Position numbers and translations under genes: made by a program. This document shows, piece after piece, positions 1-50,712 of a stretch of DNA of 64,000 nucleotides. Origin of the DNA: Phyllobates terribilis (taxonomy: Eukaryota); assembly GCF_046119375.1 (NCBI RefSeq), contig NW_027362765.1, positions 352,532,001 to 352,596,000 of the forward strand, read 5' to 3'. Each line of letters starts with the position of its first letter. Within the stretch, counting starts at the first letter, position 1. The notes beneath the pieces were generated by a model. The model was not told the origin of the DNA, ran no database searches, and saw nothing but the letters and a program-made list of their open reading frames with translations.

Positions 1-2661
1 TGGAAGCTGAATTCGTCACTCCTTGAGGAAGAAGCTGTGAGACGGTCTTTTGAGGAATTCTTTCAGAGCCAGGTACCATTGCTGGGCCTAAGTAACACTA
101 AGTCAGAGTGGTGGGAGATGTTCAAACATCGGGTGGCGAGATTCTTCCGGCAGCTCTCGAACCTCAGAAGCCTGAACAGGGATCGCCTGTATCAGAGCCT
201 GAGGAGGAAACTCGAGCATCTTGTCTCGACTGGAGGTAGCCGCGAGGAGATCTCCAGAGTGAAGTCCTTGCTGAAGAGGTGTCAGTACGATAGGCACGCA
301 TCTTTGGTTTTCGAGAGGGACTACGGGAAGTACTGCTCGCCCGACCCTTACAGAAACTGTAAGATGTCAGTGAATAGTAAGATAGTGACGGGGCTGGTGG
401 ACAGTACGGGGTCCCTGAGAAGGTCCAGATCAGGGATCTTGGAGGTCGTCAGTTCCTACTACTCACACCTCTTGGGAAGGAGGGAGCTTGATCGTGACGG
501 GATGTCGGCTTTCCTGGCTGAATCCGTTCCTGAGCCAGGGGCTGACCTCTCGCTGGGCGATTTGGCAGAAGTGATCAAAGAAGAGGAAGTGAGACTGGCG
601 ATCGATGGGCTTAGGCCCAAAAAGTCGCCAGGTCCGGATGGCTTAACATCCGAGTTCTTTAGGACCTTTAGGGACTCTTTGGTCCCCCTCATGACTCAGG
701 TGTTTAACGAGTGTCTCTCCTCGGGCACTCTGCCGAGATCATTAAGGAGGTCAGCTTTGATCATTTTGTCAAAGGGTACGGATCCGTCACGCATTGAGAA
801 CTGGCGTCCCATAGCGCTTCTCAATGTGGACAGGAAGATTTTGGCTAAGATACTTTTCAACAGGCTGGTGAAGTTTGCACCCCGGCTCCTTTCGGAGGTT
901 CAGCACTGTTGCGTTCCTGGCCGTAGCACTTTTAGTGCTGTTCTAGGTGTCCGAGAGACCGTGGAGCAAGGCAGGGCGGGCCTCTGGAAGGGGTTCTTGC
1001 TGACCCTGGATCAGGCAAAAGCCTTTGATCGTGTTAACCACGAGTACCTCTGGTCCACTCTTTTGAGGTATGGTCTGCCTGGAGGGTTTGTGGACTGGCT
1101 TAAGACCTTGTATGCAGGGGCTGAGACTTTCCCTCTGGTGAATGGGTGGATTGGACGACCTTTCGGGGTAGGATCCGGTGTCCGTCAGGGCTGTCCTCTT
1201 AGCCCTTTGCTTTACGCGTTTGCGATCGATCCCTTCCTCAGAAGGATCGAATGTGGACCGTTGGCGGGAGTGCAGATGGGCGGGGCGGCGCCGGAGGCTA
1301 TCCTGAGGGTGGTGGCCTACGCGGACGATGTCACCGTCTTTGTTTCTTCGCAAGAGGAGGCAGTGGTGGTGATGTCAGAAGTGGAACGCTACTCGGAGGC
1401 ATCCGGGTCCAAGGTCAACCAGGATAAGGCTGAGAGTCTCTGGCTGGGAGGCGGAGATCCCGGGTTTGATCTTCCGGACACCCTCCCCGAACCCCAAGAA
1501 CATGCCAAAGTCCTGGGCATCGAATTCGGCCAGGGTGATTACCCCACGAAAAACTGGGAAGGCAGAATCAAAGGTGTCGCCCAAAGAGTGGACCAATGGA
1601 GGGGTTGGTCTTTGACCCTGAGGGAAAGGGTTGGCCTGTGCAAAGCTTTCCTGCTCCCCTTGCTAATCTACCTGGGCAGTGTCTGTGTCTTGCCAGAGCC
1701 TCTCTAGACACGGGTCTACAGTCTGTTCTTCCAGATGTTATGGGGGAACAGACTGAACCTAGTCAAGCGGGAGGTCACTTACCGCACGAGGAGACTAGGG
1801 GGTTTGAATATGGTGAACCCCGTGGTGTTCCTAGTGAACACCTTCTTGAAAGTGAACGTGGCAAACCTCTGGAAAGAGAGGGCTCCTCCGTGGGTATTCT
1901 CCTGCAAGGGATGGTTTCAGCCTTTCTTCCAGGAATGGGAGACAGGGGGAAGATTGAAGGATCTTCGCACACCACACGGGCATCTCCCGGCTTATGTTAC
2001 CCCGGTTCTGAAAATGATCCGCCGGTGGGGTCTGGGAATGTGGGAGGTGAGGTCCCTCCCGAGGAAACTCCTCGATATGAGGGTCTTGCTTTCTCATTTT
2101 CAGAGTCCATTGGCCCTCAAAGACTGCCCAAGTCGGGATCTGGAGGTTGGGTTGAGTTTGTTAAATTCTAGCAGGATCCCCGAGAAGTACTGGGACTTGA
2201 CTTGGCGCTGCTTCCATGGTAAGCTGTATGTGAGGGACAATTTGAAGTTCAGGAGCTCCGAGGACAGGAATTGCCCCCGTGAGGCTTGTGCTAACGTGCT
2301 GGAAAGCATGGAGCACTTCCTGCTTCATTGTCCCTTTAATACAGAGGTGTACAACAGGGTGGGGGCTTCCATTGGTTGGCCGCGGCTGGCTACTCTGTCC
2401 TACGCCGGGTGGGCCTATGGAGCGTTCGGAGACCTTGGGAGAAGGGACCGAGACACTTTATTCATAGTCAGCGCAGTGGTCAGGTATTTCACGTGGAACG
2501 CACGAGTTTTAGTCTCGACGCAGAGTAAAATCCTCCATGTAGATGAAGTCTGTATGAACATCCTAGGTGACCTGGTGAAGGTACGTTCTCTGGAGTATGA
2601 AGGACTGGGTGCCCGGAGGGCGGCCCGTCTCTGGAGGGGCTTTTCCTTCAGGGTGCCTTAG
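1..2661 (+). pseudogene. ORF2 of copy A (RT plus C-terminal CCHC), interrupted by a nonsense codon
   Basis: RT motifs QAKAFDRV, VRQGCPLSPLLY and YADD; TAG at 1705-1707 where the other copies have TGG; the same frame continues as ORF 1735-2661 with CPREAC...EHFLLHC. Confidence 0.93.
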
Positions 2662-3481
2662 TCCGGTAGTACTCCTATATCCTGGTGGTGGGCTGATGTC
2701 TTTCCACCCTAGATTTTTGTTTTGTATTTCTGTCTCCTGAATAGAAGGTTTGCCGGCATCGAACTTGAGCCTTGGATGGTGAGTGTGTAGGTTGTGTTCT
2801 GTATATATTGTATATAATGTATAATAGGGGGTTTTAGTTAGGTTGGGTGGGGGTTTTGGGGGGGTTTTCATCGGCGGTGATAAGAGGACTGATCTGGCCT
2901 GGTCCAGGCCCCGCCTGGGGAAAAACTTTGGGGCCTGATCCTAGCTCGGAGTAATCCTGAACTTTGTGGCCAGAGCTGGATCAGGGGTGGCGGGATAGTT
3001 AGTGTAGGGCTGTGTTTTATATATATATATTAAAAAATTACAAAATATACAAAAAAAAAAAAAAAAAAAAGTTTAAAATTGTTCATGTCACTATTGTATA
3101 TATTGTTATTTTTGGTTTTCTGTGGTGTGAATGAGGTGCGGTAAGGAGGTGACTAAGGTCAGGCAGTGGGACCAGTAGGTTAGTGTTAGTGTCCGGTTGT
3201 ATATACGTTATATTAGGTTTAGTGTTTTATTGTATATAATCTTGTATATAGGACGGTGTTTTATGTGTATATAGGACGGTGTGAGTGTTGTGTGGGATTG
3301 TATATAGTAGTATGAATGAAGCTGGGCCGGGGGTCTTATAGGTTTTATAATAGTTATTTCCTGTATATATATATATATTCCTGCGGTGATTTATTTTGTT
3401 TCTATTTTCTGTGATTTGTCGTCTTGTTTTGTTCTTATGTTCGGTGTCCTGTAATGTATTATTGTTCTGTCATGTACTGTA
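1..3481 (+). mobile_element. Tx1-like (L1 clade) non-LTR retrotransposon, copy A; 5' part lies outside the window
   Basis: Near-identical to copies B, C and D from within ORF2 through the ~820-bp 3' UTR; the 3' end merges into the 32-bp minisatellite at ...CATGTACTGTA|TATATACAGG. Confidence 0.95.
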
Positions 3482-6400
3482 TATATACAGGAGGAGTGGT
3501 ACTGTGCAGTGTATATATACAGGAGGAGTGGTACTGTGCAGTGTATATACAGGAGGAGTGGTACTGTGCAGTGTATATATACAGGAGGAGTGGTACTGTG
3601 CAGTGTATATACAGGAGGAGTGGTACTGTGCAGTGTATATACAGGACAGGAGGAGTGGTACTGTGCAGTGTATATATACAGGAGGAGTTGTACTGTGCAG
3701 TGTATATACAGGAGGAGTGGTACTGTGCAGTGTATATACAGGACAGGAGGAGTGGTACTGTGCAGTGTATATATACAGGAGGAGTGGTACTGTGCGGTGT
3801 ATATATACAGGAGGAGTGGTACTGTGCGGTGTATATATACAGGAGGAGTGGTACTGTGCGGTGTATATATACAGGAGGAGTGGTACTGTGCGGTGTATAT
3901 ACAGGACAGGAGGAGTGGTACTGTGCAGTGTATATATACAGGAGGAGTGGTACTGTGCAGTGTATATATACAGGACAGGAGGAGTGGTACTGTGCAGTGT
4001 ATATATACAGGAGGAGTGGTACTGTGCAGTGTATATATACAGGACAGGAGGAGCTGTACTGTGCAGTGTATATATACAGGACAGGTGGAGTGGTACTGTG
4101 CACTGTATATATACAGGAGGAGTGGTACTGTGCAGTGTATATATACAGGACAGGAGGAGTGGTACTGTGCAGTGTATATATACAGGATAGGAGAAGTGGT
4201 ACTGTGCAGTGTATATATACAGGACAGGAGAAGTGGTACTGTGCAGTGTATATATACAGGAGGAGTGGTACTCTGCAGTGTATATATACAGGACAGGAGG
4301 AGTGGTACTGTGCAGTGTATATATACAGGACAGGAGGAGTGGTACCGTGCAGTGTATATATACAGGACAGGAGGAGTGGTGCTGTGCACTGTATATATAC
4401 AGGAGGAGTGGTACTGTGCAGTGTATATATACAGGACAGGAGGAGTGATACTGTGCAGTGTGTATATACAGGACAGGAGGAGTGGTACTGTGCAGTGTAT
4501 ATATACAGGAGGAGTGGTACTGTGCAGTGTATATACAGGACAGGAGGAGTGGTACTGTGCAGGGTATATATACAGGAGGAGTGGTACTGTGCAGTGTATA
4601 TATACAGGACAGGAGGAGTGGTACTGTGCAGTGTATATATACAGAAGAAGTGGTACTGTGCAGTGTATATATATATATAGGACAGGAGGAGTGATACTGT
4701 GCAGTGTATATATACAGGACAGGAGAAGTGGTACTGTGCAGTGTATATACAGGAGGAGCTGTACTGTGCAGTGTATATACAGGAGGAGTGGTACTGTGCA
4801 GTGTATATACAGGACAGGAGGAGTGGTACTGTGCAGTGTATATATACAGGAGGAGTTGTACTGTGCAGTGTATATACAGGAGGAGTGGTACTGTGCAGTG
4901 TATATACAGGACAGGAGGAGTGGTACTGTGCAGTGTATATATACAGGAGGAGTGGTACTGTGCGGTGTATATATACAGGAGGAGTGGTACTGTGCGGTGT
5001 ATATATACAGGAGGAGTGGTACTGTGCGGTGTATATATACAGGAGGAGTGGTACTGTGCGGTGTATATACAGGACAGGAGGAGTGGTACTGTGCAGTGTA
5101 TATATACAGGAGGAGTGGTACTGTGCAGTGTATATATACAGGACAGGAGGAGTGGTACTGTGCAGTGTATATATACAGGAGGAGTGGTACTGTGCAGTGT
5201 ATATATACAGGACAGGAGGAGCTGTACTGTGCAGTGTATATATACAGGACAGGTGGAGTGGTACTGTGCACTGTATATATACAGGAGGAGTGGTACTGTG
5301 CAGTGTATATATACAGGACAGGAGGAGTGGTGCTGTGCACTGTATATATACAGGAGGAGTGGTACTGTGCAGTGTATATATACAGGACAGGAGGAGTGAT
5401 ACTGTGCAGTGTGTATATACAGGACAGGAGGAGTGGTACTGTGCAGTGTATATATACAGGAGGAGTGGTACTGTGCAGTGTATATACAGGACAGGAGGAG
5501 TGGTACTGTGCAGGGTATATATACAGGAGGAGTGGTACTGTGCAGTGTATATATACAGGACAGGAGGAGTGGTACTGTGCAGTGTATATATACAGAAGAA
5601 GTGGTACTGTGCAGTGTATATATATATAGGACAGGAGGAGTGATACTGTGCAGTGTATATATACAGGACAGGAGAAGTGGTACTGTGCAGTGTATATATA
5701 CAGGAGGAGTGGTACTGTGCAGTGTATATATACAGGAGGAGTGGTACTGTGCAGTGTATATATACAGGACAGGAGGAGCTGTACTGTGCAGTGTATATAT
5801 ACAGGACAGGAGGAGTGGTACTGTGCAGTGTATATATACAGGACAGGAGGAGCTGTACTGTGCAGTGTATATATACAGGACAGGAGGAGTGGTACTGTGC
5901 ACTGTATATATACAGGAGGAGTGGTACTGTGCAGTGTATATATACAGGACAGGAGGAGTGGTGCTGTGCACTGTATATATACAGGAGGAGTGGTACTGTG
6001 CAGTGTATATATACAGGACAGGAGGAGTGATACTGTGCAGTGTGTATATACAGGACAGGAGGAGTGGTACTGTGCAGTGTATATATACAGGACAGGAGGA
6101 GTGATACTGTACAGTGTGTATATACAGGACAGGAGGAGTGGTACTGTGCAGTGTGTATATACAGGACAGGAGGAGTGGTACTGTGCAGTGTATATATACA
6201 GGACAGGAGGAGTGGTACTGTGCAGTGTGTATATACAGGAGAAGTGGTACTGTGCAGTGTATATACAGGACAGGAGGAGTGGTACTGTGCAGTGTATATA
6301 TACAGGAGGAGTGGTACTGTGCAGTGTATATACAGGACAGGAGGAGTGGTACCGTGCAGTGTATATATACAGGACAGGAGGAGTGGTACTGTGCAGTGTA

Positions 6401-6537
6401 TATATACAGGACAGGAGGAGTGGTACTGTGCAGTGTATATATACAGGACAGGAGGAGTGATACTGTGCAGTGTATATATACAGGAGAAGTGGTACTGTGC
6501 AGTGTATATACAGGACAGGAGGAGTGGTACTGTGCGG
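3482..6537 (+). repeat. Minisatellite A (target repeat): 32-bp unit CAGGAGGAGTGGTACTGTGCAGTGTATATATA with 30/35/37-bp variants
   Basis: Direct tandem periodicity (e.g. 3488 to 3520); variants add CAGGA or lose TA. Confidence 0.97.
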
Positions 6538-6728
6538 TGAGTTGATGTTATGGATTTATTCCCGGTGAAGTGTTTTTCTCAGGTTTATGGATTATTATAT
6601 TCAGTAATTAGTCTGTGCAGTAAACATATAAGTCAGAGTTCGGCTCCTATTCTGGTAATTACATGCCGGTGATCGATCAGTCGTTATACACAATCAATCA
6701 TGAATCATATTTGCATCATCACATGTCT

Positions 6729-8179: not shown

Positions 8180-9103
8180 GGCCACAGCCCCACTATCAGC
8201 ATAAGACCACGGCCCCACTATCAGTATAAGACCACGTCCCCACTATCAGTATAAGACCACGGCCCCACTATCAGTATAAGACCACGGCCCCACTATCAGT
8301 ATAAGACCACGGCCCCACTATCAGTATAAGACCACGGCCCCACTATCAGTATAAGACCACGGCCCCACTATCAGTATAAGACCACGGCCCCACTATCAGT
8401 ATAAGACCACGGCCCCACTATCAGTATAAGACCACGGCCCCACTATCAGTATAAGACCACAGCCCCACTATCAGTATAAGACCACGGCCCCACTATCAGT
8501 ATAAGGCCACGGCCCCACTATCAGTATAAGGCCACGGCCCCACTATCAGTATAAGACCACGGCCCCACTATCAGTATAAGACCACGGCCCCACTATCAGT
8601 ATAAGGCCACGGCCCCACTATCAGTATAAGACCACGGCCCCACTATCAGTATAAGACCACGGCCCCACTATCAGTATAAGACCACGGCCCCACTATCAGT
8701 ATAAGACCACGGCCCCACTATCAGTATAAGGCCACGGCCCCACTATCAGTATAAGGCCACGGCCCCACTATCAGTATAAGACCACAGCCCCACTATCAGT
8801 ATAAGACCACGGCCCCACTATCAGTATAAGACCACGGCCCCACTATCAGTATAAGGCCACGGCCCCACTATCAGTATAAGACCACGGCCCCCACTATCAG
8901 TATAAGACCACAGCCCCACTATCAGTATAAGACCACGGCCCCACTATCAGTATAAGACCACGGCCCCACTATCAGTATAAGGCCACGGCCCCACTATCAG
9001 TATAAGGCCACGGCCCCACTATCAGTATAAGACCACAGCCCCACTATCAGTATAAGACCACGGCCCCACTATCAGTATAAGACCACGGCCCCACTATCAG
9101 TAT
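8180..9103 (+). repeat. Minisatellite C, 25-bp unit ACCACGGCCCCACTATCAGTATAAG
   Basis: About 37 nearly perfect tandem units. Confidence 0.97.
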
Positions 9104-9283
9104 TCGGTCAGTATTTGGTCAGTATTCGGTCAGTATTTTTTCTCAGGAGCCAAAACCAGGAGAGGAACAATCAGAGAAAAGGTAGAATAGAAACAAGTCA
9201 CCAATTCTGCATTTATCACCCACTGCTGAGAACAAATACTGACCGAATACTGACCAGATACTGATAGTGGGGCCGTGGCCTTA
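9078..9283. mobile_element. MITE-like non-autonomous DNA transposon (~206 bp) with long terminal inverted repeats
   Basis: Left arm TAAGACCACGGCCCCACTATCAGTATTCGGTCAGTATT... is the reverse complement of right arm ...AATACTGACCGAATACTGACCAGATACTGATAGTGGGGCCGTGGCCTTA; no coding capacity. Confidence 0.75.
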
Positions 9284-9589
9284 CAATGTTATCGGTCTGG
9301 TGTCATTAACCCCTCTTATACCGCAGCGATGTATTCTGGCTCTAAAAGTGCAGAATGTCAAGGACTGATAAACTGTAACAAACCCTCATGTGTGAGAAGC
9401 GCGAGGTCAAAGCACCTGATAAAGAGCTCAACATCTAAGGGGGTCAGTCCACAAGGGGCAGAAAGTGATGGTGTGATAGAGCAAGGAAAGTCCAGCTCCA
9501 GCCTGGAATAATGTGACATCACTGTGTGTATTATCCCTGTACTGTGACATCACAGACGGGGCGTGAGGTACAGGGGGCACGGGGTACAA

Positions 9590-15879: not shown

Positions 15880-16636
15880 TACTGCCCCTATATACAAAAA
15901 TATAACTACTATAACACTGCACATATGTACAAGAATATAACTACTATAATACTGCCCCCTATGTACAGGAATATAACTACTATAATACTGCTCCTATGTA
16001 CAAGAATATAACTACTATAATACTGCCTCTATGTACAAGAATATAACTACTATAATACTGCTCCTATGTACAAGAATATAACTACTATAATACTGCCCCT
16101 ATGTACATGAATATAACTACTATAATACTGCCACTATGTACAAGAATATAACTACTATAATACTGCTCCTATATACAAGAATATAACTACTATAATGCTG
16201 CCCCTATGTACAAGAATATAACTACTATAATACTGCCCCCTATGTACAAGAATTTATCTACTATAATACTGCCCCTATGGACAAGAATATAACTACTATA
16301 ATACTGCCCCTATGTACAAGAATATAACTACTATAATACTGCCCCCTATGTACAAGAATTTATCTACTATAATACTGCCTCTATGTACAAGAATATAACT
16401 ACTATAATACTGCCCACTATGCACAAGAATATATCTACTATAATACTGCTCCTATGTACAAGAATATAACTACTATAATACTGCCCCCTATGTACAAGAA
16501 TATAACTACTATAATACTGCCCCCTATGTACAAGAATATAACTACTATAATACTGCTCCTATGTACAAGAATATAACTACTATAATACTGCCCCCTATGT
16601 ACAAGAATATAACTACTATAATACTACCTCCTATAG
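15880..16636 (+). repeat. Minisatellite F, 35-36-bp unit ACTACTATAATACTGCCCCTATGTACAAGAATATA
   Basis: About 21 tandem AT-rich units. Confidence 0.96.
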
Positions 16637-17920: not shown

Positions 17921-18009
17921 TTGGTGCCGATAATACATAAAGCGGCCCACTGAGACTCTTTTCCCCAGGGTCCATGAACACCTGGAGCCGGCCCTGGGGT
18001 CATGTCCAG

Positions 18010-24849: not shown

Positions 24850-24860
24850 GATTGATTGAA

Positions 24861-35100: not shown

Positions 35101-35828
35101 ATCTTGCCGGTGAAGGGACCAGTAGGGGCGGGGGAGGCAGGGAACCGGTGAGGAGCAAGCTGCCGCCATCCACCATCAGGCGGCAGGAGAAGCGCCGTGG
35201 GGACAGGGGCCAGGGAGTAATGTCCCTAAACTCTGACCCAGGTACTTCACTTGCAGCTGAGGATCCTAAAGACAGTGAATTGAGCGAGGAAGTCAAGAGA
35301 CTTGAAAGGGAAGAGCGAGAGGACGCCACGTCTTCCCAGGAACCCTCTTCTGGTGACAGTCTAGATGAGGGAGAGGGGGAGTGGTCACAGAAAAAGAAAA
35401 AGGGTAACAGAAAAACGGCCAGAGGTAGGAGGGGGACCAGGTCTCGAGCTGCCTCTTTGGAGTGCGACCCCTCTGACTCTCTGGCCGTGATCCAAGCGCC
35501 ATTGGAGGGTTCAGCCGCCCCCCCTCTGGTGGATCTCTCCAACCGGTTCATGGCTCTCCAGGACCTCCCTCTGGAGGGGGGAAGTGGGGACCCGGGGCCG
35601 GAGGTTGCAGACAAGGTGGTTGGGGCTCAGGAGATGGCTGGGTCTTCCTCTCGGGGGGCAAATACAAAGCCCTCTGGGGGGACGACTAACCCAGGACCAC
35701 CAGACGAGGGCAAGAATGTATGTAAGGAGAGAATGGACGAGTCTGTTTGTCTTAAGCGCACTAAAAACCCGTCATTATCGGAGGAAGAGGTTGGGACTGT
35801 CAGTGGTGGGAAGAAAAAGGCTATCTAA
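32181..35828 (+). pseudogene. ORF1 of copy C with a premature stop and an in-frame 69-bp duplication
   Basis: TGA at 32445-32447 where B and D have CGA; duplicated EEEEGGLL(REIRLL) segment near 32880-32950; the rest is open to 35828. Confidence 0.9.
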
Positions 35829-35839
35829 TTCAATCAATC

Positions 35840-38800: not shown

Positions 38801-39244
38801 GGTAAGCTGTATGTGAGGGACAATTTGAAGTTCAGGAGCTCCGAGGACAGGAATTGCCCCCGTGAGGCTTGTGCTAACGTGCTGGAAAGCATGGAGCACT
38901 TCCTGCTTCATTGTCCCTTTAATACAGAGGTGTACAACAGGGTGGGGGCTTCCATTGGTTGGCCGCGGCTGGCTACTCTGTCCTACGCCGGGTGGGCCTA
39001 TGGAGCGTTCGGAGACCTTGGGAGAAGGGACCGAGACACTTTATTCATAGTCAGCGCAGTGGTCAGGTATTTCACATGGAACGCACGAGTTTTAGTCTCG
39101 ACGCAGAGTAAAATCCTCCATGTAGATGAAGTCTGTAGGAACATCCTAGGTGACCTGGTGAAGGTACGTTCTCTGGAGTATGAAAGACTGGGTGCCCGGA
39201 GGGCGGCCCGTCTCTGGAGGGGCTTTTCCTTCAGGGTGCCTTAG
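35840..39244 (+). CDS. ORF2 of copy C, intact 1134-aa APE endonuclease / reverse transcriptase / CCHC
   Basis: All catalytic motifs present (N..K, QET, GDFN, DRF, SDH; QG.PLSP; YADD; C..C...H....C). Confidence 0.95.
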   Translation: MMAAPTPLTLATINVCSIKSDAARYTAFHFLGQLDADILFLQETRLTDISTLHKARREWRHGPSYWSLAAEPYSGVAVLFKTAAVECRRVIELEMGRCLILDVSMGGQELRLINIYGSQSKWDRKCLFLKIKPFLFSSRQVVFGGDFNNVTRSCDRGGSGDRLAYDCVALNRIVSEARLVDVHIRHNPGDTGFTFFRGSQCRSRLDRFYLKEEAVSSPLSVVEVEFSDHCLIMFSLNVTETPRMGRGYWKLNSSLLEEEAVRRSFEEFFQSQVPLLGLSNTKSEWWEMFKHRVAKFFRQLSNLRSLNRDRLYQSLRRKLEHLVSTGGSREEISRVKSLLKRCQYDRHASLVFERDYGKYCSPDPYRNCKMSVNSKIVTGLVDSTGSLRRSRSGILEVVSSYYSHLLGRRELDRDGMSAFLAESVPEPGADLSLGDLAEVIKEEEVRLAIDGLRPKKSPGPDGLTSEFFRTFRDSLVPLLTQVFNECLSSGTLPRSLRRSALIILSKGKDPSRIENWRPIALLNVDRKILAKILFNRLVKFAPRLLSEVQHCCVPGRSTFSAVLGVREAVEQGRAGLWKGFLLTLDQAKAFDRVNHEYLWSTLSRYGLPGGFVDWVKTLYAGAETFPLVNGWIGRPFGVGSGVRQGCPLSPLLYAFAIDPFLRRIDCGPLAGVRMGGAAPEAILRVVAYADDVTVFVSSQEEAVVVMSEVERYSEASGSKVNQDKCESLWLGGGDPGFDLPDTLPEPQEHAKVLGIEFGQGDYPTKNWEGRIKGVTQRVDQWRGWSLTLRERVGLCKAFLLPLLIYLGSVCVLPEPLWTRVYSLFFQMLWGNRLNLVKREVTYRMRRLGGLNMVNPVVFLVNTFLKVNVANLWKERAPPWVFSCKGWFQPFFQEWETGGRLKDLRTPHGHLPAYVTPVLKMILRWGLGMWEVRSLPRKLLDMRVLLSHFQSPLALKDCPSRVLEVGLSLLNSSRIPEKYWDLTWRCFHGKLYVRDNLKFRSSEDRNCPREACANVLESMEHFLLHCPFNTEVYNRVGASIGWPRLATLSYAGWAYGAFGDLGRRDRDTLFIVSAVVRYFTWNARVLVSTQSKILHVDEVCRNILGDLVKVRSLEYERLGARRAARLWRGFSFRVP

Positions 39245-40067
39245 TCCGGTAGTACTCCTATATCCTGGTGGTGGGCTGATGTCTTTTCTCCCTAGATTTT
39301 TGTTTTGTATTTCTGTCTCCTGGATAGAAGGTTTGCCGGCATTGAACTTGAGCCTTGGATGGTGAGTGTGTAGGTTGTGTTCTGTATATATTGTATATAA
39401 TGTATAATAGGGGTTTTTAGTTAGGTTGGGTGGGGGATTTGGGGGGGTTCTTCATCAGCGGTGATAAGAGGACTGATCTGGCCTGGTCCAGGCCCCGCCT
39501 GGGGAAAAACTTTGGGGCCTGATCCTAGCTCGGAGTAATCCTGAACTTTGTGGCCAGAGCTGGATCAGGGGTGGCGGGATAGTTAGTGTAGGGCTGTGTT
39601 TTATATATATATTAAAAATTACAAAATATACAAAAAAAAAAAAAAAAAAAAGGTTTAAAATTGTCCATGTCACTATTGTATATCTTGTTATTTTTGGTTT
39701 TCTGTGGTGTGAATGAGGTGCGGTAAGGGGGTGACTGTAAGGTCAGGCAGTGGGACCAGTAGGTTAGTGTTAGTGTCCGGTTGTATATACGGTATATTAG
39801 GTTTAGTGTTTTATTGTATATAATCTTGTATATAGGACGGTGTTTTATGTGTATATAGGACGGTGTGAGTGTTGTGTGGGATTGTATATAGTAGTATGAA
39901 TGAAGCTGGGCCGGGGGTTTTATAGGTTTTATAATAGTTATTTCTTGTATATATATATATATATTCCTGGGGGGATTTATTTTGTTTCTATTTTCTGTGA
40001 TTTGTCGTCTTGTTTTGTTCTTATGTTCGGTGTCCTGTAATGTATTATTGTTCTGTCATGTACTGTA

Positions 40068-40571
40068 TATATACAGGAGGAGTGGTACTGTGCAGTGTAT
40101 ATATGGAGTGGTACTGTGCAGTGTATATATGGAGTGGTACTGTGCAGTGTATATATACAGGACAGGAGGAGTGGTACTGTGCAGTGTATATATACAAGAC
40201 AAGGGAGAAGTGGTACTGTGCAGTGTATATATAGAGGAGGAGTGGTACTGTGCAGTGTATATATACAGGACAGGAGCAGTGGTACTGTGCAGTGTATATA
40301 TACAGGACAGGAGGAGTGGTACTGTGCAGTGTATATATACAGGAGGAGTGGTACTGTGCAGTGTATATATAGAGGAGGAGTGGTACTGTGCAGTGTATAT
40401 ATACAGGACAGGAGAAGTGGTACTGTGCAGTGTATATATACAGGACTGGAGGAGTAGTACTGTGCAGTGTATATATACAGGACAGGAGAAGTGGTACTGT
40501 GCAGTATATATACAGGACAGGAGGAGTGGTACTGTGCAGTGTACACACACAGGACAGGAGGAGTGGTGCTG
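40068..40571 (+). repeat. Minisatellite A spacer between tandem copies C and D
   Basis: About 15 units; begins with 26-bp short variants and ends with the TACACACAC junction unit. Confidence 0.95.
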
Positions 40572-40670
40572 AGAGTAGCACCTGCCTCCTGAGCTCAAGC
40601 ACTTCCAGGAGGAGGGTCGTCGTCTGCCTCTCTTCTCCCCAGGGAGAGGCAGGCCTACTGGGAGGCCGGC

Positions 40671-43600
40671 ATGGCTTCCCAGCCTCCTATTCCCCGGTCT
40701 ATGCCGACCTGGGAGAAGGAGCCTCAACAACCGGCCCAGGAGGGAGTGAGGAGATCGGGAAGGGTGAGGAAGAACACATCCACCTGCTCCAACCCCGAGA
40801 CTGTTCACCGCCAGCCCAGAGAGGGAGACCAGGGCACCCCAGGCCCCAGGAACAAGAGCCCAGCAAGATCCTGGGGGGAGATGAGCTCCAGCGAGTCCAC
40901 AAGTTCCTTCTCCTCCCGAGTGGTCACCACGTTGCGAGAGTACGAGGACGCCGGCAAAGCACTAACCCAGCTGAAAGAGGAGCTGAGGGAGGCCCGGGTC
41001 CTGAACACCCGGGCGTCCAACAAGGAGAGACCCGCGACCTCCCAGAGGTTTAAAGCCCTCAGAGACGAGGTGGTCAGGTTAGTGCTCCTCCGGGAGGGGA
41101 TTGAGAAAAGCGCAGGTCCCTTCCTGGAGAGGTTTAAGAACCAGCGGCGGTTCTCAGAAATGAAGGTGTTAAACACCTCAGGAGAACCGCCAGCCGGCGT
41201 CCTTAGTGAAGAGGAGGAGGAGGATGAAGAGGTGACTGGAGTCTCAGTTGCTGGAGCCAGTGAGGGGCAGAGCCAGAGCTCAAGTGGTCTCCCTGCAGGG
41301 CAGAGGACTCCGACAGCAGAGGCTGGAGTGTCGGGGGAGGAGGAGGAAGGAGGACTGCTGAGGGAGATCCGACTGCTGGAGTCACCAGTGGACCTGACGC
41401 GGTTTTCCTTCGGTGAGGACAAACCAGTGGAGGAGACCAAGAGGAGGAAGAGGAAGACCGGAGGAGCTGCACAGGAGGTGGTGAGTTACAAGTATGTACC
41501 AATGTCTGATGTTGAGCCTGCCACCTCCTGTGTAAACCCCACCAAACCTAAAGGCACGGGCTCTGCAGTGGGCTCGAGGCAGAGGCAAGGTGGGGAGAGG
41601 AGGAGGACGTCCGGCGATGCTGCCATCTGTGCGGGGAACAGTGCAGGGGGCGAGGCTGTGGAGGTACTCACAGCGCCGGACATAGGAAGTTCTGTGGAGT
41701 TTCCCACCCTGCCCTCTGCGGCTAAGCCGGTTATCACCGGGGCCGGGGGGGCAGGGAAGGATGTGAAAAACACATCTGCAAAGAACACTGGGCACACTGC
41801 TGCGACAGGGGGGCAGTGTGCCCCAGCGCCCAAAAAGGACACTAAGACCCCAAATTCTGTGGGTGCAGGGCGGGCAGAGGTGCCGAGAAAACAGTCTGGC
41901 CAGAACAAGGACCAAAATGGTGCAGTAGAGGGGCGGGGCGCTCCAGCAGACGACCTGCAGAAAGCCAGCAGCAACCAAAGGGAAACGGGTGTGGTGCTGC
42001 AGGGAAAGGAGTCTCTGGGAGTGCTCCCCTCCCCCGGCCCAGCAGGTGTGAGTGCAGAGACACCAGACACAAGGGAGGAAGGAATGGAGGTGACTGTGGA
42101 AGGTGCAGAGAACAGCAGAGGTAATGGGGTGACAAGTAAAGGGAATGGAAATAGTGGTGCAGTGAATGATGGGAGTAATGGTGGAGCAGATGGTGGGAGT
42201 AATGGTGGAGCAAATGGTGAGAGTAGTAGGAATGGTGGAAGTAGTGGTACAGTGAATGATGATGCAGCAAATGGTGGGGGTAGTGGTGCAGTGAATGATG
42301 ATGCAGCAAATGGTGGGGGTAGTGGTGGAATGAATGGTGGGAGTAGTGGTGTAGCAAATGTTGGGGGTAGTGGTGTACTGAATGGTGGGAGTAGTGATGC
42401 AGCAAATGGTGGGAGAAGTAGTGGAGTGAATGATGGGAGTAATGGTCCTGCGAATGGTGTGAGTAGTAGTGGAGTGAATGGTGGGAGCAGCACTGGTGTT
42501 GGTGGGGGGGAAGTAGGCGCTGGTCCCGCTGCCCCCCCAGCATTGGCAGGGGATTCAGCCCAAAGCTATTCAGGAGCTGTCAGTGCTGGGGGTAGTCGTG
42601 CGCCCTCGTCTGGTGGCCCTGGGGATGGTGACTTGCAACAGCAGCTCCTGGACGCCCTGAGGAGAGGGGAGGGAGGTTGATCTGTCTTTCTGGATAGAGA
42701 GACATGGTCTTTCAGCCTTCCGAGATAGAGGGGCAGAGACTGTCTGGTCTCTGCCGACAACGGGGCAGAGGAGGGTAAGCAGTGAGTAAGCAAGGATGCC
42801 TGTCCTGATAGGTCGAAGGTGGTTGAGCTCCTGCTGGGGATGGGCTTTGCGGCATATGACATCTTTGCCTTGATCCATCCCTACGGGACCTCCTACTTCG
42901 ATGTCAGCTTCGTGAGACCGGAGGGCCTTGAGCTTCTCTGGTCTCGCCATGAGCTGGCTCGGAGTCGCCCTGAATGGCATGGTCTCTTTCCCCTGGCAAT
43001 AACCCGCCAAGATTCAGTCAGGAAAGTGACCGTTTTGACTAGTAACGAGTCGCTTTCCTGTATGGACATTACCACCTGGGTGAGTAGATACGGAGAGGTC
43101 ACCAATATTCCCGAAAAGAATCTGGATGACCATGGTATCTGGTCAGGGGCCTGGACCTTCATGGTGAGATTGAAGGTTTCGGGAAACACTGTTACCCATA
43201 TCCCCTCCTCAACCTTTTTGGGGAGGGATAGGATCTTGATTTTCTACCGGGGGCAGCCTAAGGTCTGTCACAGGTGCGGTAGCCCCACACACTTCAGTGC
43301 GCAGTGTACCACCCAGAAATGCGCACTGTGTGGGGACCTCGGTCATCTTGCTGCTGCCTGTCGCAGGATTAGGTGTAACTTGTGTGGTGACCTCGGTCAC
43401 CCGTTCAGTCGCTGTCCGCGTTCCTTCGCCAATGCGGTCCTGAAATCGGCGAGTGCGGGACAGGCGAAAGCTGGAACTAATCTTGCCGGTGAAGGGACCA
43501 GTAGGGGCGGGGGAGGCAGGGAACCGGTGAGGAGCAAGCTGCCGCCATCCACCATCAGGCGGCAGCAGAAGCGCCGTGGGGACAGGGGGCAGGGAGTAAT

Positions 43601-44207
43601 GTCCCTAAACTCTGACCCAGGTACTTCACTTGCAGCTGAGGATCCTAAAGACAGTGAATTGAGCGAGGAAGTCAAGAGACTTGAAAGGGAAGAGCGAGAG
43701 GACGCCACGTCTTCCCAGGAACCCTCTTCTGGTGACAGTCTAGATGAGGGAGAGGGGGAGTGGTCACAGAAAAAGAAAAAGGGTAACAGGAAAACGGCCA
43801 GAGGTAGGAGGGGGACCAGGTCTCGAGCTGCCTCTTTGGAGTGCGACCCCTCTGACTCTCTGGCCATGATCCAAGCGCCATTGGAGGGTTCAGCCGCCCC
43901 CCCTCTGGTGGATCTCTCCAACCGGTTCGGGGCTCTCCAGGACCTCCCTCTGGAGGGGGGAAGTGGGGACCCGGGGCCGGAGGTTGCGGACAAGGTCGTT
44001 GGGGCTCAGGAGATGGCTGGGTCTTCCTCTCGGGGGGCAAATACAAAGCCCTCTGGGGGGATGACTAACCCAGGACCACCAGACGAGGGCAAGAATCTAT
44101 GTAAGGAGAGAATGGATGAATCTGTTTGTCTTAAGCGCACTAAAAACCCGTCATTATCAGAGGAAGAGGTTGGGACTGTCAGTGGTGGGAAGAAAAAGGC
44201 TATCTAA
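40671..44207 (+). pseudogene. ORF1 of copy D, broken by two small deletions and stop codons
   Basis: 23-bp deletion near 42669, a 25-to-6-bp replacement near 42774, TGA at 42678 and 42783. Confidence 0.9.
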
Positions 44208-44218
44208 TTCAATCAATC

Positions 44219-47200
44219 ATGATGGCGGCACCCACCCCGTTGACGCTGGCAACTATTAATGTTTGCAGCATAAAGTCAGATGCGGCAAGGTACACGGCCT
44301 TTCATTTTCTCGGCCAACTTGACGCCGACATTTTGTTTTTGCAGGAGACCAGGTTGACCGATATATCAACCTTGCATAAAGCAAGGCGGGAGTGGAGGCA
44401 TGGGCCCTCCTACTGGTCTCTTGCGGCCGAGCCGTATAGCGGGGTGGCGGTCCTTTTTAAGACCGCAGCGGTTGAATGCAGACGAGTGATCGAATTAGAA
44501 ATGGGGAGATGCTTGATCCTAGATGTCTCCATGGGGGGACAAGAGCTTCGGCTCATTAACATCTATGGTTCCCAGTCCAAGTGGGACCGCAAATGTCTCT
44601 TCCTGAAGATCAAACCTTTTTTATTTTCGAGTCGGCAGGTGGTCTTCGGAGGGGATTTCAACAATGTCACGAGATCCTGTGATAGAGGAGGTTCCGGAGA
44701 CCGGCTGGCTTATGACTGCGTCGCGTTAAACAGGATAGTGAGTGAGGCTCGCCTGGTGGATGTCCACATCCGGCACAACCTGGGCGACACGGGATTCACC
44801 TTTTTTAGAGGTAGTCAGTGCAGGTCTAGGCTAGATAGGTTTTATTTGAAGGAGGAGGCCGTCTCTTCGCCGTTGTCGGTTGTGGAGGTGGAGTTCTCCG
44901 ATCACTGTTTGATTTTGTTTTCCCTGAATGTTACAGAGACTCCTCGGATGGGAAGAGGCTATTGGAAGCTGAATTCATCACTCCTTGAGGAAGAAGCTGT
45001 AAGACGGTCTTTTGAGGAATTCTTTCAGAGCCAGGTACCATTGCTGGGCCTAAGTAACACTAAGTCGGAGTGGTGGGAGATGTTCAAACATCGGGTGGCG
45101 AGATTCTTCCGGCAGCTCTCGAACCTCAGAAGCCTGAACAGGGATCGCCTGTATCAGAGCCTGAGGAGGAAACTCGAGCATCTTGTCTCGACTGGAGGTA
45201 GCCGCGAGGAGATCTCCAGAGTGAAGTCCTTGCTGAAGAGGTGTCAGTACGATAGGCACGCATCTTTGGTTTTCGAGAGGGACTACGGGAAGTACTGCTC
45301 GCCCGACCCTTACAGAAACTGTAAGATGTCAGTGAATAGTAAGATAGTGACGGGGCTGGTGGACAGTACGGGGTCCCTGAGAAGGTCCAGATCAGGGATC
45401 TTGGAGGTTGTCAGTTCCTACTACTCGCACCTCTTGGGAAGGAGGGAGCTTGATCGTGACGGGATGTCGGCTTTCCTGGCTGAATCTGTTCCTGAGCCAG
45501 GGGCTGACCTCTCGCTGGGCGATTTGGCAGAAGCGATCAAAGAAGAGGAAGTGAGACTGGCGATCGATGGGCTTAGGCCCAAAAAGTCGCCAGGTCCGGA
45601 TGGCTTAACATCCGAGTTCTTTAGGACCTTTAGGGACTCTTTGGTCCCCCTCTTGACTCAGGTGTTTAACGAGTGTCTCTCCTCGGGCACTCTGCCGAGA
45701 TCATTAAGGAGGTCAGCTTTGATCATTTTGTCAAAGGGTAAGGATCCGTCACGCATTGAGAACTGGCGTCCCATAGCACTTCTCAATGTGGACAGGAAGA
45801 TTTTGGCTAAGATACTTTTCAACAGGCTGGTGAAGTTTGCACCCCGGCTCCTTTCGGAGGTTCAGCACTGTTGCGTTCCTGGCCGTAGCACTTTTAGTGC
45901 TGTTCTAGGTGTCCGAGAGGCCGTGGAGCAAGGCAGGGCGGGCCTCTGGAAGGGGTTCTTGCTGACCCTGGATCAGGCAAAAGCCTTTGATCGGGTTAAC
46001 CACGAGTACCTCTGGTCCACTCTTTTGAGGTATGGTCTGCCTGGAGGGTTTGTGGACTGGCTTAAGACCTTGTATGCAGGGGCTGAGACTTTCCCTCTGG
46101 TGAATGGGTGGATTGGACGACCTTTTGGGGTAGGATCCGGTGTCCGTCAGGGCTGTCCTCTTAGCCCTTTGCTTTACGCGTTTGCGATCGATCCCTTCCT
46201 CAGAAGGATCGATTGTAGACCGTTGGCGGGGGTGCGGATGGGCGGGGCGGCGCCGGAGACTATCCTGAGGGTGGTGGCCTACGCGGACGATGTCACCGTC
46301 TTTGTTTCTTCGCAAGAGGAGGCAGCAGCGGTGATGTCAGAAGTGGAGCGCTACTCGGAGGCATCCGGGTCCAAGGTCAGCCAGGATAAGTGTGAGAGTC
46401 TCTGGCTGGGAGGCGGAGATCCCGGGTTTGATCTTCCGGACACCCTCCCCGAACCCCAAGAACATGCCAAAGTCCTGGGCATCGAATTCGGCCAGGGTGA
46501 TTACCCCACGAAAAACTGGGAAGGCAGAATCAAAGGTGTCGCCCAAAGAGTGGACCAATGGAGGGGTTGGTCTTTGACCCTGAGGGAAAGGGTTGGCCTG
46601 TGCAAAGCTTTCCTGCTCCCCTTGCTAATCTACCTGGGCAGCGTCTGTGTCTTGCCAGAGCCTCTCTGGACACGGGTCTACAGTCTGTTCTTCCAGATGT
46701 TATGGGGGAACAGACTGAACCTAGTCAAGCGGGAGGTCACTTACCGCACGAGGAGACTAGGGGGTTTGAATATGGTGAACCCCGTGGTGTTCCTAGTGAA
46801 CACTTTCTTGAAAGTGAACGTGGCAAACCTCTGGAAAGAGAGGGCTCCTCCGTGGGTATTCTCCTGCAAGGGATGGTTTCAGCCTTTCTTCCAGGAATGG
46901 GAGACAGGGGGAAGATTGAAGGATCTTCGCACACCACACGGGCATCTCCCGGCTTATGTTACCCCGGTTCTGAAAATGATCCGCCGGTGGGGTCTGGGAA
47001 TGTGGGAGGTGAGGTCCCTCCCGAGGAAACTCCTCGATATGAGGGTCTTGCTTTCTCATTTTCAGAGTCCATTGGCCCTCAAAGACTGCCCAAGTCGGGA
47101 TCTGGAGGTTGGGTTGAGTTTGTTAAATTCTACCAGGATCCCCGAGAAGTACTGGGACTTGACTTGGCGCTGCTTCCATGGTAAGCTGTATGTGAGGGAC

Positions 47201-47623
47201 AATTTGAAGTACAGGAGCTCCGAGGACAGGAATTGCCCCCGTGAGGCTTGTGCTAACGTGCTGGAAAGCATGGAGCACTTCCTGCTTCATTGTCCCTTTA
47301 ATACAGAGGTGTACAACAGGGTGGGGGCTTCCATTGGTTGGCCGCGGCTGGCTACTCTGTCCTACGCCGGGTGGGCCTATGGAGCGTTCGGAGACCTTGG
47401 GAGAAGGGACCGAGACACTTTATTCATAGTCAGCGCAGTGGTCAGGTATTTCACGTGGAACGCACGAGTTTTAGTCTCGACGCAGAGTAAAATCCTCCAT
47501 GTAGATGAAGTCTGTAGGAACATCCTAGGTGACCTGGTGAAGGTACGTTCTCTGGAGTATGAAGGACTGGGTGCCTGGAGGGCGGCCCGTCTCTGGAGGG
47601 GCTTTTCCTTCAGGGTGCCTTAG
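44219..47623 (+). CDS. ORF2 of copy D, intact 1134-aa APE-RT-CCHC
   Basis: Full open frame with all motifs, near-identical to copy C. Confidence 0.95.
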   Translation: MMAAPTPLTLATINVCSIKSDAARYTAFHFLGQLDADILFLQETRLTDISTLHKARREWRHGPSYWSLAAEPYSGVAVLFKTAAVECRRVIELEMGRCLILDVSMGGQELRLINIYGSQSKWDRKCLFLKIKPFLFSSRQVVFGGDFNNVTRSCDRGGSGDRLAYDCVALNRIVSEARLVDVHIRHNLGDTGFTFFRGSQCRSRLDRFYLKEEAVSSPLSVVEVEFSDHCLILFSLNVTETPRMGRGYWKLNSSLLEEEAVRRSFEEFFQSQVPLLGLSNTKSEWWEMFKHRVARFFRQLSNLRSLNRDRLYQSLRRKLEHLVSTGGSREEISRVKSLLKRCQYDRHASLVFERDYGKYCSPDPYRNCKMSVNSKIVTGLVDSTGSLRRSRSGILEVVSSYYSHLLGRRELDRDGMSAFLAESVPEPGADLSLGDLAEAIKEEEVRLAIDGLRPKKSPGPDGLTSEFFRTFRDSLVPLLTQVFNECLSSGTLPRSLRRSALIILSKGKDPSRIENWRPIALLNVDRKILAKILFNRLVKFAPRLLSEVQHCCVPGRSTFSAVLGVREAVEQGRAGLWKGFLLTLDQAKAFDRVNHEYLWSTLLRYGLPGGFVDWLKTLYAGAETFPLVNGWIGRPFGVGSGVRQGCPLSPLLYAFAIDPFLRRIDCRPLAGVRMGGAAPETILRVVAYADDVTVFVSSQEEAAAVMSEVERYSEASGSKVSQDKCESLWLGGGDPGFDLPDTLPEPQEHAKVLGIEFGQGDYPTKNWEGRIKGVAQRVDQWRGWSLTLRERVGLCKAFLLPLLIYLGSVCVLPEPLWTRVYSLFFQMLWGNRLNLVKREVTYRTRRLGGLNMVNPVVFLVNTFLKVNVANLWKERAPPWVFSCKGWFQPFFQEWETGGRLKDLRTPHGHLPAYVTPVLKMIRRWGLGMWEVRSLPRKLLDMRVLLSHFQSPLALKDCPSRDLEVGLSLLNSTRIPEKYWDLTWRCFHGKLYVRDNLKYRSSEDRNCPREACANVLESMEHFLLHCPFNTEVYNRVGASIGWPRLATLSYAGWAYGAFGDLGRRDRDTLFIVSAVVRYFTWNARVLVSTQSKILHVDEVCRNILGDLVKVRSLEYEGLGAWRAARLWRGFSFRVP

Positions 47624-48471
47624 TCCGGTAGTACTCCTATATCCTGGTGGTGGGCTGATGTCTTTCCACCCTAGATTTTTGTTTTGTATTTCTGTCTCCT
47701 GAATAGAAGGTTTGCCGGCATCGAACTTGAGCCTTGGATGGTGAGTGTGTAGGTTGTGTTCTGTATATATTGTATATAATGTATAATAGGGGGTTTTAGT
47801 TAGGTTGGGTGGGGGATTTGGGGGGGTTTTCATCAGCGGTGATAAGAGGACTGATCTGGCCTGGTCCAGGCCCCGCCTGGGGAAAAACTTTGGGGCCTGA
47901 TCCTAGCTCGGAGTAATCCTGAACTTTGTGGCCAGAGCTGGATCAGGGGTGGCGGGATAGTTAGTGTAGGTCTGTGTTTTATATATATATTAAAAAATTA
48001 CAAAATAAAAAAAAAATACAAAAAAAAAAAAAAGGTTTAAAATTGTTCATGTCACTATTGTATATATTGTTATTTTTGGTTTTCTGTGGTGTGAATGAGG
48101 TGCGGTAAGGGGGTGACTAAGGTCAGGCAGTGGGACCAGTAGGTTAGTGTTAGTTCCCGGTTGTATATACGTTATATTAGGTTTAGTGTTTTATTGTATA
48201 TAATCTTGTATATAGGACGGTGTTTTATGTGTATATAGGACGGTGTGAGTGTTGTGTGGGATTGTATATAGTAGTATGAATGAAGCTGGGCCGGGGGTTT
48301 TATAGGTTTTATAATAGTTATTTCCTGTATATATATATATATTCCTGGGGGGATTTATTTTGTTTCTATTTTCTGTGATTTGTCGTCTTGTTTTGTTCTT
48401 ATGTTCGGTGTCCTGTAATGTATTATTGTTCTGTCATGTACTGTACTTATTCTATCAATAAAAAAAAGACC

Positions 48472-50712
48472 TGCAGTGTATATATGGAGTGGTGCTGTGC
48501 AGTGTATATATACAGGAGGAGTGGTACTGTGCAGTGTATATATACAGGAGCGGTGGTACTGTGCAGTGTATATATACAGGAGGAGTGGTACTGTGCAGTG
48601 TATATATACAGGAGCGGTGGTACTGTGCAGTGTATATATACAGGAGGAGTGGTACTGTGCAGTGTATATATACAGGAGGAGTGGTACTGTGCGGTGTATA
48701 TATACAGGAGGAGTGGTACTGTGCAGTGTATATATACAGGAGCGGTGGTACTGTGCAGTGTATATATACAGGAGGAGTGGTACTGTGCGGTGTATATATA
48801 CAGGAGCGGTGGTACTGTGCAGTGTATATATACAGGAGCGGTGGTACTGTGCAGTGTATATATACAGGAGGAGTGGTACTGTGCAGTGTATATATACAGG
48901 AGGAGTGGTACTGTGCGGTGTATATATACAGGAGGAGTGGTACTGTGCAGTGTATATATACAGGAGCGGTGGTACTGTGCAGTGTATATATACAGGAGGA
49001 GTGGTACTGTGCGGTGTATATATACAGGAGGTGTGGTACTGTGCAGTGTATATATACAGGAGGAGTGGTACTGTGCAGTGTATATATACAGGAGAAGTGG
49101 TACTGTGCAGTGTATATATACAGGACAGGAGGAGTGGTACAGTGCAGTGTATATATACAGGAGCGGTGGTACTGTGCAGTGTATATATACAGGAGGAGTG
49201 GTACTGTGCGGTGTATATATACAGGAGGTGTGGTACTGTGCAGTGTATATATACAGGAGGAGTGGTACTGTGCAGTGTATATATACAGGAGAAGTGGTAC
49301 TGTGCAGTGTATATATACAGGAGGAGCGGTACTGTGCAGTGTATATATACAGGACAGGAGGAGTGGTACAGTGCAGTGTATATATACAGGAGAAGTGGTG
49401 CTGTGCAGTGTATATATACAGGACAGGAGGAGTGGTACTGTGCAGTGTATATATACAGGAGGAGTGGTACTGTGCAGTGTATATATACATTAGGAGTGGT
49501 ACTGTGCAGTGTATATATACAGGAGGAGTGGTACTGTGCAGTGTATATATACAGGAGAAGTGGTACTGTGCAGTGTATATATACAGGAGGAGCGGTACTG
49601 TGCAGTGTATATATACAGGACAGGAGGAGTGGTACAGTGCAGTGTATATATACAGGAGGTGTGGTACTGTGCAGTGTATATATACAGGAGGAGTGGTACT
49701 GTGCAGTGTATATATACAGGAGAAGTGGTACTGTGCAGTGTATATATACAGGAGGAGCGGTACTGTGCGGTGTATATATACAGGACAGGAGGAGTGGTAC
49801 AGTGCAGTGTATATATACAGGAGGAGTGGTACTGTGCAGTGTATATATACAGGAGAAGTGGTACTGTGCAGTGTATATATACAGGAGCGGTGGTACTGTG
49901 CAGTGTATATATACAGGAGGAGCTGTACTGTGCAGTGTATATATACAGGAGGAGCTGTACTGTGCAGTGTATATATACAGGAGGAGCTGTACTGTGCAGT
50001 GTATATATACAGGAGGAGTGGTACTGTGCAGTGTATATATACAGGAGCGGTGGTACTGTGCAGTGTATATATACAGGAGGAGTGGTACTGTGCGGTGTAT
50101 ATATACAGGACAGGAGGAGTGGTACTGTGCAGTGTATATATACAGGAGCGGTGGTACTGTGCAGTGTATATATACAGGACAGGAGGAGTGGTACTGTGCA
50201 GTGTATATATACAGGAGCGGTGGTACTGTGCAGTGTATATATACAGGACAGGAGGAGTGGTACTGTGCAGTGTATATATACAGGAGGAGTGGTACTGTGC
50301 AGTGTATATATACAGGAGCGGTGGTACTGTGCAGTGTATATATACAGGAGGAGTGGTACTGTGCAGTGTATATATACAGGAGCGGTGGTACTGTGCAGTG
50401 TATATATACAGGAGGAGTGGTACTGTGCAGTGTATATATACAGGAGGAGTGGTACTGTGCGGTGTATATATACAGGAGGAGTGGTACTGTGCAGTGTATA
50501 TATACAGGAGGAGTGGTACTGTGTGGTGTATATATACAGGAGGAGCTGTACTGTGCAGTGTATATATACAGGACAGGAGGAGTGGTACTGTGCAGTGTAT
50601 ATATACAGGAGGAGTGGTACTGTGCGGTGTATATATACAGGAGGAGTGGTACTGTGCAGTGTATATATACAGGAGGAGTGGTACTGTGTGGTGTATATAT
50701 ACAGGAGGAGCT
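48472..50712 (+). repeat. Minisatellite A array, 3' flank of copy D
   Basis: About 68 units; array-enriched CAGGAGCGGTGG variant. Confidence 0.97.

Follow-up and report, generated by a model that had tools for sequence, protein, structure and literature searches.

A probably target-specific LINE lineage of hyloid frogs and the likely multiplication of one insertion in a minisatellite of Phyllobates terribilis

Four copies (c1 to c4) of one long interspersed nuclear element (LINE) lie in a 64,000-nucleotide stretch of the Phyllobates terribilis genome (NCBI RefSeq assembly GCF_046119375.1, contig NW_027362765.1, positions 352,532,001 to 352,596,000 of the forward strand; this whole stretch is called the window here), and every end of theirs that can be seen abuts the same repeat, minisatellite A. 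The locus raises the question of whether the element selects this repeat as its target or whether a single insertion has been multiplied, flanks included, by processes acting on DNA. An earlier note on this DNA had argued for the first answer, proposing a Tx1-like retrotransposon that inserts at one phase of a 32-bp minisatellite unit. We find that the answer has two parts. The lineage to which the element belongs is likely to be target-specific for sites within tandem repeats, and the four copies in the window are likely to be DNA-level derivatives of about one insertion. As a combined statement, a target-specific lineage with a single insertion multiplied at the DNA level is the account that we favour with reasonable confidence.

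The copies are 98.4-99.0% identical to each other in pairwise comparison. Two of them, c2 (20594-28556, minus strand, full length) and c4 (40572-48471, plus strand), have canonical termini at both ends, c3 (32082-40072, plus strand) is full length at its 5' end, and c1 (1-3480, plus strand) has its 5' part beyond the window start, leaving the 3' three-quarters of the second open reading frame (ORF2) and the 3' untranslated region (UTR). No fragment of the element was found across the window outside these four copies. Tandem Repeats Finder, run over the whole window, gave 12 families of tandem repeats (units of 18-70 bp), and these and the LINE copies account for most of the 64 kb. Minisatellite A, whose units are mainly 32 and 37 bp, forms six arrays (A1 to A6) and accounts for about a quarter of the non-element sequence, by arithmetic on the array coordinates. 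All seven visible element ends are located in it, in one orientation relative to the element throughout, and the other 11 families in the window hold no copy. The 5' junctions of c2, c3 and c4 are letter-identical (...GGAGTGGTGCTG/AGAGTAGCACC, the slash marking the junction; in a wider view, ...ggagtggtgctg/agagtagcacc), and so are the 3' junctions of c2 and c4 (...aataaaaaaaagacc/tgcagtg, that is, ...GACC/TGCAGTG). When the flanks are rejoined, the unit of minisatellite A is restored exactly, with neither duplication nor loss. To this point our observations agree with those of the earlier note, which did not mention that c1 and c3 share another 3' junction (...catgtactgta/tatatacagg), where the 3' UTR ends about 26 nt early; c3 is shortened exactly like c1. 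We did not adopt a different placing of the boundary that would give a 6-bp duplication (ACCTGC, found close to the 5' terminus as well as at the 3' junction). It is the less probable one, as it calls for an otherwise absent unit variant carrying an 11-bp insertion, although this was judged on copies that are not independent.

Whether identical junctions amount to repeated events depends on the flanks, which we parsed unit by unit (about 270 units of minisatellite A in total). Array A4 (31491-32081, plus strand), the 5' flank of c3, ends in about 400 bp that carry the unit-variant series of the c4 5' flank. At least 11 idiosyncratic unit variants follow one another in the same order in both flanks, and over 400 bp the two show 396 matches, one mismatch and three gap positions. 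The background for the c4 flank, drawn from 411 windows of the long arrays, reaches 94.3% at best, with per-array means of 87-91%. The ACACAC variant is confined to the three units that touch 5' ends and is found in none of about 266 others, while the GTGCTG variant is rare and enriched at junctions. In A3 (28557-31161, minus strand), the 5' flank of c2, which is built from a 69-bp higher-order repeat (32 + 37 bp), both variants are present solely in the unit touching the element. Units of 26 bp are confined to the neighbourhood of 3' ends: five or more in a row adjoin c2 in A2 (19896-20593, minus strand), two follow c3, and one follows c4 as the first unit of A6 (48472-50732, plus strand), the remainder of which is mostly 32 bp. 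The 3' flank of c1 (A1: 3481-6539, plus strand) has units of 32, 37, 35 and 30 bp and none of 26 bp.

The arrangement of the copies is also informative. A5 (40073-40571, plus strand), which lies between c3 and c4, is a hybrid with unit types of both flanks, in the order one partial unit, two 26-bp units of the 3'-flank type, the c3 5'-flank series, and a final ACACAC unit. This composition is explained by unequal crossing-over between the arrays flanking a single insertion, which would yield exactly such an order. Copies c2 and c3 are placed head to head around a unique spacer of 330 bp (31162-31490) between two inverted arrays, which indicates an inverted duplication. Within the element, informative sites in the 3' 3.4 kb favour the split ((c1,c3),(c2,c4)) by 12:3:1, in agreement with the two types of 3' junction, and over the first 1.5 kb c3 and c4 fall together and c2 apart, in agreement with the common 5' flank of c3 and c4. 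Genealogies that are concordant with the flanks in this way are predicted by duplication, unequal exchange and gene conversion and not by independent retrotransposition. We therefore conclude that the window represents about one insertion, two at most. The recurrent junctions of the earlier note are real, but the number of events behind them was overcounted. That note had itself named duplication of a single insertion at the DNA level as the finding that would speak against its proposal, and the flank series, the edge units, the aberrant 3' junction and the mosaic genealogies all point to such duplication.

The competing explanation is that the element entered minisatellite A by site-specific retrotransposition on four separate occasions, or on three at the least. 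The edge units would then be 5' or 3' transductions of about one unit, or variants preferred by the endonuclease, and the identity of the c3 and c4 flanks would reflect a higher-order periodicity of about 400 bp in the original array. The divergence of the copies does suit this explanation, since it is nearly star-like, with 13-19 private sites per copy. However, the agreement of the c3 and c4 flanks lies far beyond the background of the arrays, a period of about 400 bp was not detected in the long arrays, and the absence of ACACAC and 26-bp units from the other units counted leaves a model of preferred variants without free targets. Nor would separate events be expected to give c1 and c3 their common shortened 3' junction, or genealogies that track the flanks. 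We regard independent insertion of the four copies as unlikely, and return below to the observations in other frogs that bear on it.

With only about one event to consider and with minisatellite A occupying so large a share of the window, the landing of the element in this repeat is not significant by itself, and the window alone does not prove target-specific integration. Loci with related elements, found through protein similarity alone, come from three other hyloid frogs (Pristimantis, Eleutherodactylus and Engystomops). Their ORF2 is 73-80% identical to that of the window (tblastn, ignoring stops), with 56% for a fragmented copy at locus L009. In Pristimantis euphronides, L010 (ORF2 of 1077 aa) is flanked on both sides by one 34-bp minisatellite (160 and 67 units) and has the 3' junction ...caataaaagagt/tgtagtgtaag. 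A second locus of this species, L011, has an ORF2 98.8% identical to that of L010 and is flanked on both sides by a 76-bp repeat; no long ORF2 is listed for L011 or for L012. The L010 and L011 sites share a 12-bp motif (..CTATGG(GGG)TGTC^T), the 3' junction follows ..TGTC in both repeats, and the 12 bp preceding the junction point are missing or replaced on the 5' side. In this family, the flank starts directly after the last base of the element, with no carried tail.

A further repeat, of about 97 bp, flanks both sides of the elements in L012 (Pristimantis: 9224-9392 and 17406-17595), L013 (Eleutherodactylus coqui: 8874-9318 and 17705-19822) and L009 (Engystomops pustulosus: 8218-9271 and 18652-19706). 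L013 is located in an intron next to PEX1 and has both ORFs open. Five 3' junctions in this repeat (L012, L013, two in L009, and L014 of E. pustulosus) fall on the same nucleotide ±1 in three species (...aaaagat(t)/(a)tacaggatgtaac), and the uninterrupted site can be read at L009 22500-22574. L012 and L013 have a common 5' junction as well, about three bases upstream of the 3' site, and both 5' junctions of L009 are placed 10-25 bp further upstream. Target-specific LINEs are recognised by 3' boundaries that are precise and 5' boundaries that vary (PMC4640811), and this signature is present in the relatives. Their terminus is AATAAA(A)nGA with one or two further bases, and a long poly(A) is lacking; one relative 3' junction reads TGTAGTGTA, its counterpart in the window being TGCAGTGTA. 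Both flanks are readable at six loci (the window, L010-L013 and the main copy of L009), and at all six one repeat family is present on both sides.

Could these locations nevertheless have arisen by chance? In such an explanation, an ordinary L1-like insertion landed without specificity in an abundant minisatellite and was spread by segmental duplication, and the likeness of the Pristimantis junction is coincidental or due to related minisatellites. It gains from the single visible event, from the abundance of minisatellite A, from the general richness of frog loci in tandem repeats, and from the genic surroundings, on four chromosomes, of P. terribilis gene models that include ORF1 exons. It is at odds with the matching repeats on both sides of six out of six lineage loci, with five recurrent 3' junctions in one unit of about 97 bp across three species, with the lack of a poly(A) tail or target-site duplication (unlike promiscuous L1), and with the first nine bases of the 3' flank, which match between L010 and the window (tgcagtgta) at eight of nine positions. 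Chance cannot explain the tandem-repeat location together with the recurrent junctions in the lineage, even in repeat-rich genomes, and we consider an absence of target specificity in the window family improbable. The proposal of the earlier note that the family targets a minisatellite thus finds its support in the independent loci of three frog species, where the lineage is site-specific in tandem repeats, and not in four events at the window.

Several observations weigh against the reading that we prefer, a target-specific lineage with one insertion multiplied at the DNA level, and some of them speak for independent insertions instead. The 5' flank of c2 and all of the 3' flanks are common over the first unit or units only, and the number of 26-bp units varies among the copies, as separate insertions would allow; a DNA-level origin of c2 and c1 therefore needs later turnover of the arrays. 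The mosaic genealogies need several conversion events. At L014, only about 38 nt of the repeat unit lie between the 3' end of the element and unique intronic DNA, from which it follows that off-target events occur or that the element can carry along a piece of a unit; the latter is what a transduced tail would do, although the L010 and L011 flanks, which begin at the last base of the element, speak against carried tails. The L010 and L011 elements belong to one family and yet occupy more than a single repeat. The minisatellite-A target itself rests on about one event. Finally, the specificity of the relatives' lineage would in itself make repeated insertion at the window easier to accept, and in L009 (1-3120), one LINE ends and the next starts after a single repeat unit of about 85 bp, a head-to-tail arrangement like that of c3 and c4.

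For the window family, a target at ...GGTACTG^TGCAGTG of minisatellite A is plausible because the one event is matched by an analogous junction in Pristimantis, and we lean slightly towards it. The earlier claim of insertion at one phase of the 32-bp unit accordingly has about one event in the window and this Pristimantis junction behind it. We suggest a mechanism by analogy with site-specific LINEs of the apurinic/apyrimidinic endonuclease (APE) type such as Tx1L (PMC1950540). The APE endonuclease would nick the bottom strand at a short motif, equivalent to ...GGTACTG^TGCAGTG on the top strand, and target-primed reverse transcription, primed at the nick from the ...GACC terminus, would give the precise 3' junction. 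Processing of the second strand from a few to about 25 bp upstream would give the variable 5' junction. A single insertion would have come to lie between a unit with the ACACAC and GTGCTG variants and the 26-bp units. An inverted duplication of this insertion with its flanks could then have separated c2 from c3, and unequal crossing-over between the flanking arrays could have produced the c3-c4 pair. Gene conversion among the copies may have placed a c1-type 3' end on c3, and the arrays away from the edges would have been homogenised independently.

We also considered that the element might itself have generated minisatellite A, by tandem amplification of its terminal sequences as a tail repeat. 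The first 14 or so nucleotides of the element (AGAGTAGCACCTGC) are loosely like the unit (GGAGTGGTACTGTGC), and the 3' UTR contains a 13-nt match to the unit on the opposite strand. Real homology between unit and element is lacking, however, the sole matches being 9-13 nt long; the arrays extend to as much as 3 kb on both sides, and the family of L010 and L011 sits in two unrelated repeats. An array without any LINE inside is moreover known from Engystomops pustulosus (L014: 10353-13316), where repeats of a 39-bp unit, with 72-78% identity to minisatellite A, extend over 3 kb, which makes minisatellite A an old family whose existence does not depend on the element. We rejected the derivation of the minisatellite from the element, and consider a tail repeat very unlikely.

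The nature of the element is clear from its coding content. ORF2 contains, by Pfam, an Exo_endo_phos domain (residues 12-229), RVT_1 (513-756) and zf-RVT (971-1031), and ORF1, separate and upstream by a gap of about 10 nt, contains RBD_ZCCHC3_1st, RBD_ZCCHC3_2nd and zf-CCHC. The top solved-structure matches of ORF2 are to human LINE-1 ORF2p (E = 1e-71) and span both the APE and the reverse transcriptase (RT) regions. At the 3' end of the element, AATAAA(A)nGA plus two bases forms the terminus without a long poly(A). An N-terminal APE, a central RT, a C-terminal zinc-binding region and an RNA-binding ORF1 upstream are the characters of the L1 superfamily, and judged from its predicted proteins the element may safely be classed as a young L1-superfamily LINE with APE and RT and an ORF1 of the CCHC/RRM type. 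In c2, ORF1 (24861-28457, minus strand) is intact (1198 aa) and ORF2, with its APE, RT and zf-RVT regions (21446-24849, minus strand), has one frameshift; in c3, ORF1 (32181-35828, plus strand) has one in-frame stop and ORF2 (35840-39244, plus strand) is intact (1134 aa); in c4, ORF1 (40671-44207, plus strand) has one in-frame stop and up to two frameshifting indels by alignment, and ORF2 (44219-47623, plus strand) is again intact (1134 aa). The ORF2 part of c1 (1-2661) has one in-frame stop. Both ORFs are open together in none of the four window copies. We note that ORF1 includes a coding tandem repeat of 24/48 bp (26623-26962, 33734-34066 and 42152-42487) that encodes a Gly/Asn/Ser-rich region and differs in length, in frame, between copies.

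The label "Tx1-like" remains a lead. An ORF1 of the RRM/CCHC type, rather than of coiled-coil type II, fits the Tx1 clade without defining it (PMC5203782), and this combination, a Tx1-consistent feature, is present in the window element. No protein named Tx1 was among the hits of the word-index searches with ORF2 and the C-terminal part of ORF1, the exhaustive representative search or the cluster look-ups. The nearest ORF2 relatives are unnamed RT proteins from frogs, coelacanth and teleosts. Closer to P. terribilis, ORF2 fragments in Anomaloglossus and Dendrobates are 77-80% identical, and the ORF1 N-terminus shows 86% identity to a protein of Ranitomeya imitator and 89-100% to P. terribilis gene models on four chromosome-size contigs, which means that the family is dispersed over several chromosomes. 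Four of the five P. terribilis gene models with the ORF1 N-terminus (P0060-P0064) exit after ...AAQEV into unrelated exons (P0061 exits earlier), which suggests a splice donor within ORF1 through which transcripts become chimeric with those of host genes. Contigs of relatives from ENA and Logan (L001-L003) stop within the element and show no junction, and a scan of JGI metagenome contigs gave distant LINEs only (25-27% identical). In the characiform fish Metynnis hypsauchen, distant ORF2 relatives (the cluster of P0084) are annotated as many adjacent genes on two chromosomes, the clustered arrangement that one would expect of array-targeting LINEs.

Some features of these loci are peripheral to the question of targeting. 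At 52002-53171 on the minus strand of the window, two neighbouring ORFs with a SCAN domain and a CCHC zinc knuckle look like a gag-like remnant of a long terminal repeat retrotransposon or a fragment of a SCAN-domain gene. No Rfam family was found in the window. A 35-bp minisatellite at 15878-16634 has the unit of an array in E. coqui (L013: 3342-7480, 36 bp, 116 units) minus one C. The repeat of about 97-100 bp is some 88-95% identical among Engystomops, Pristimantis and Eleutherodactylus and is also seen as solitary units (L009: 2956-3040 and the uninterrupted site at 22500-22574); it may be part of a dispersed element rather than a classical satellite. Some frog minisatellite families thus appear, from such unit comparisons, to be common to distant hyloid lineages, and those shared by hyloid frogs are perhaps parts of transposable elements.

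Elements that target repeats are not new in kind. It is chiefly the Tx1 and R1 clades that contain target-specific APE LINEs (PMC4640811), and the known targets of Tx1 elements include a DNA transposon (Tx1L), the U2, U5 and 5S genes, microsatellites and satellites (PMC4494074), so that satellite- and microsatellite-targeting Tx1 families are already in print. Tx1L of Xenopus laevis (Tx1 clade) resembles the window element in being a frog APE LINE with two ORFs and one defined site in a repeated host element (PMC1950540 and PMC4494074). Its target, however, lies within the Tx1D transposon, whereas that of the window element would be a 32/37-bp minisatellite and those of its relatives are other tandem repeats; the kinship of the two was compared at the level of the L1 superfamily. 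Kibi, Koshi, the crocodilian (TTCC)n/(TTTC)n families and the families labelled "Sat" in Fig. 3 of PMC4494074 are likewise APE LINEs in tandem repeats, with fixed orientation and phase and with targets that shift between related families. The Kibi/Koshi-type targets are microsatellites of 2-4 bp, in contrast to the units of 26-37, 76 and about 97 bp used by the frog elements, and a single family in two unrelated repeats with a common 12-bp motif, as in L010 and L011, sets the Pristimantis elements apart from them too.

Human LINE-1 (8uw3, 8sxt and 9hdo), the best structure match noted above, has the same domain order. It differs in its ORF1 of coiled-coil type II, its poly(A) tail, its target-site duplications and its loose TTTT/AA target, where the frog element has an ORF1 of the CCHC/RBD type and sites in tandem repeats, and lacks both a long poly(A) and a visible duplication. 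R1, R2 and other LINEs specific for ribosomal DNA or other repeats share precise 3' and variable 5' junctions and the presence of several copies per tandem target array (PMC4640811), but belong to different clades and use different targets; R2 in addition has a restriction-like endonuclease, and ORF2 of the window element matches it over the RT only (E = 1e-20 to 1e-26).

For genome scans, the locus carries a caution, as identical junctions in satellite-rich regions can be the product of one insertion multiplied by unequal crossing-over, and the unit-variant series of the flanks must be compared before events are counted. More broadly, we give about an even chance to the possibility that L1/Tx1-like LINEs have undergone a hitherto undescribed radiation in neobatrachian frogs, with each family homing to a motif of about 10-12 bp in a different minisatellite or satellite (32/37, 34, 76 and about 97 bp) and targets switching between families. 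The window family would be the dendrobatid member, aimed at ...GGTACTG^TGCAGTG. The APE domains of the relatives are 74-81% identical to that of the window element, and in the alignment three surface stretches vary between families with different targets. If a census confirms this, minisatellite- and satellite-homing LINEs of hyloid frogs would be added to the known target-specific APE elements, and endonucleases so similar to each other with different repeat sites would, if confirmed, provide a natural series on how APE-type endonucleases read DNA sequence.

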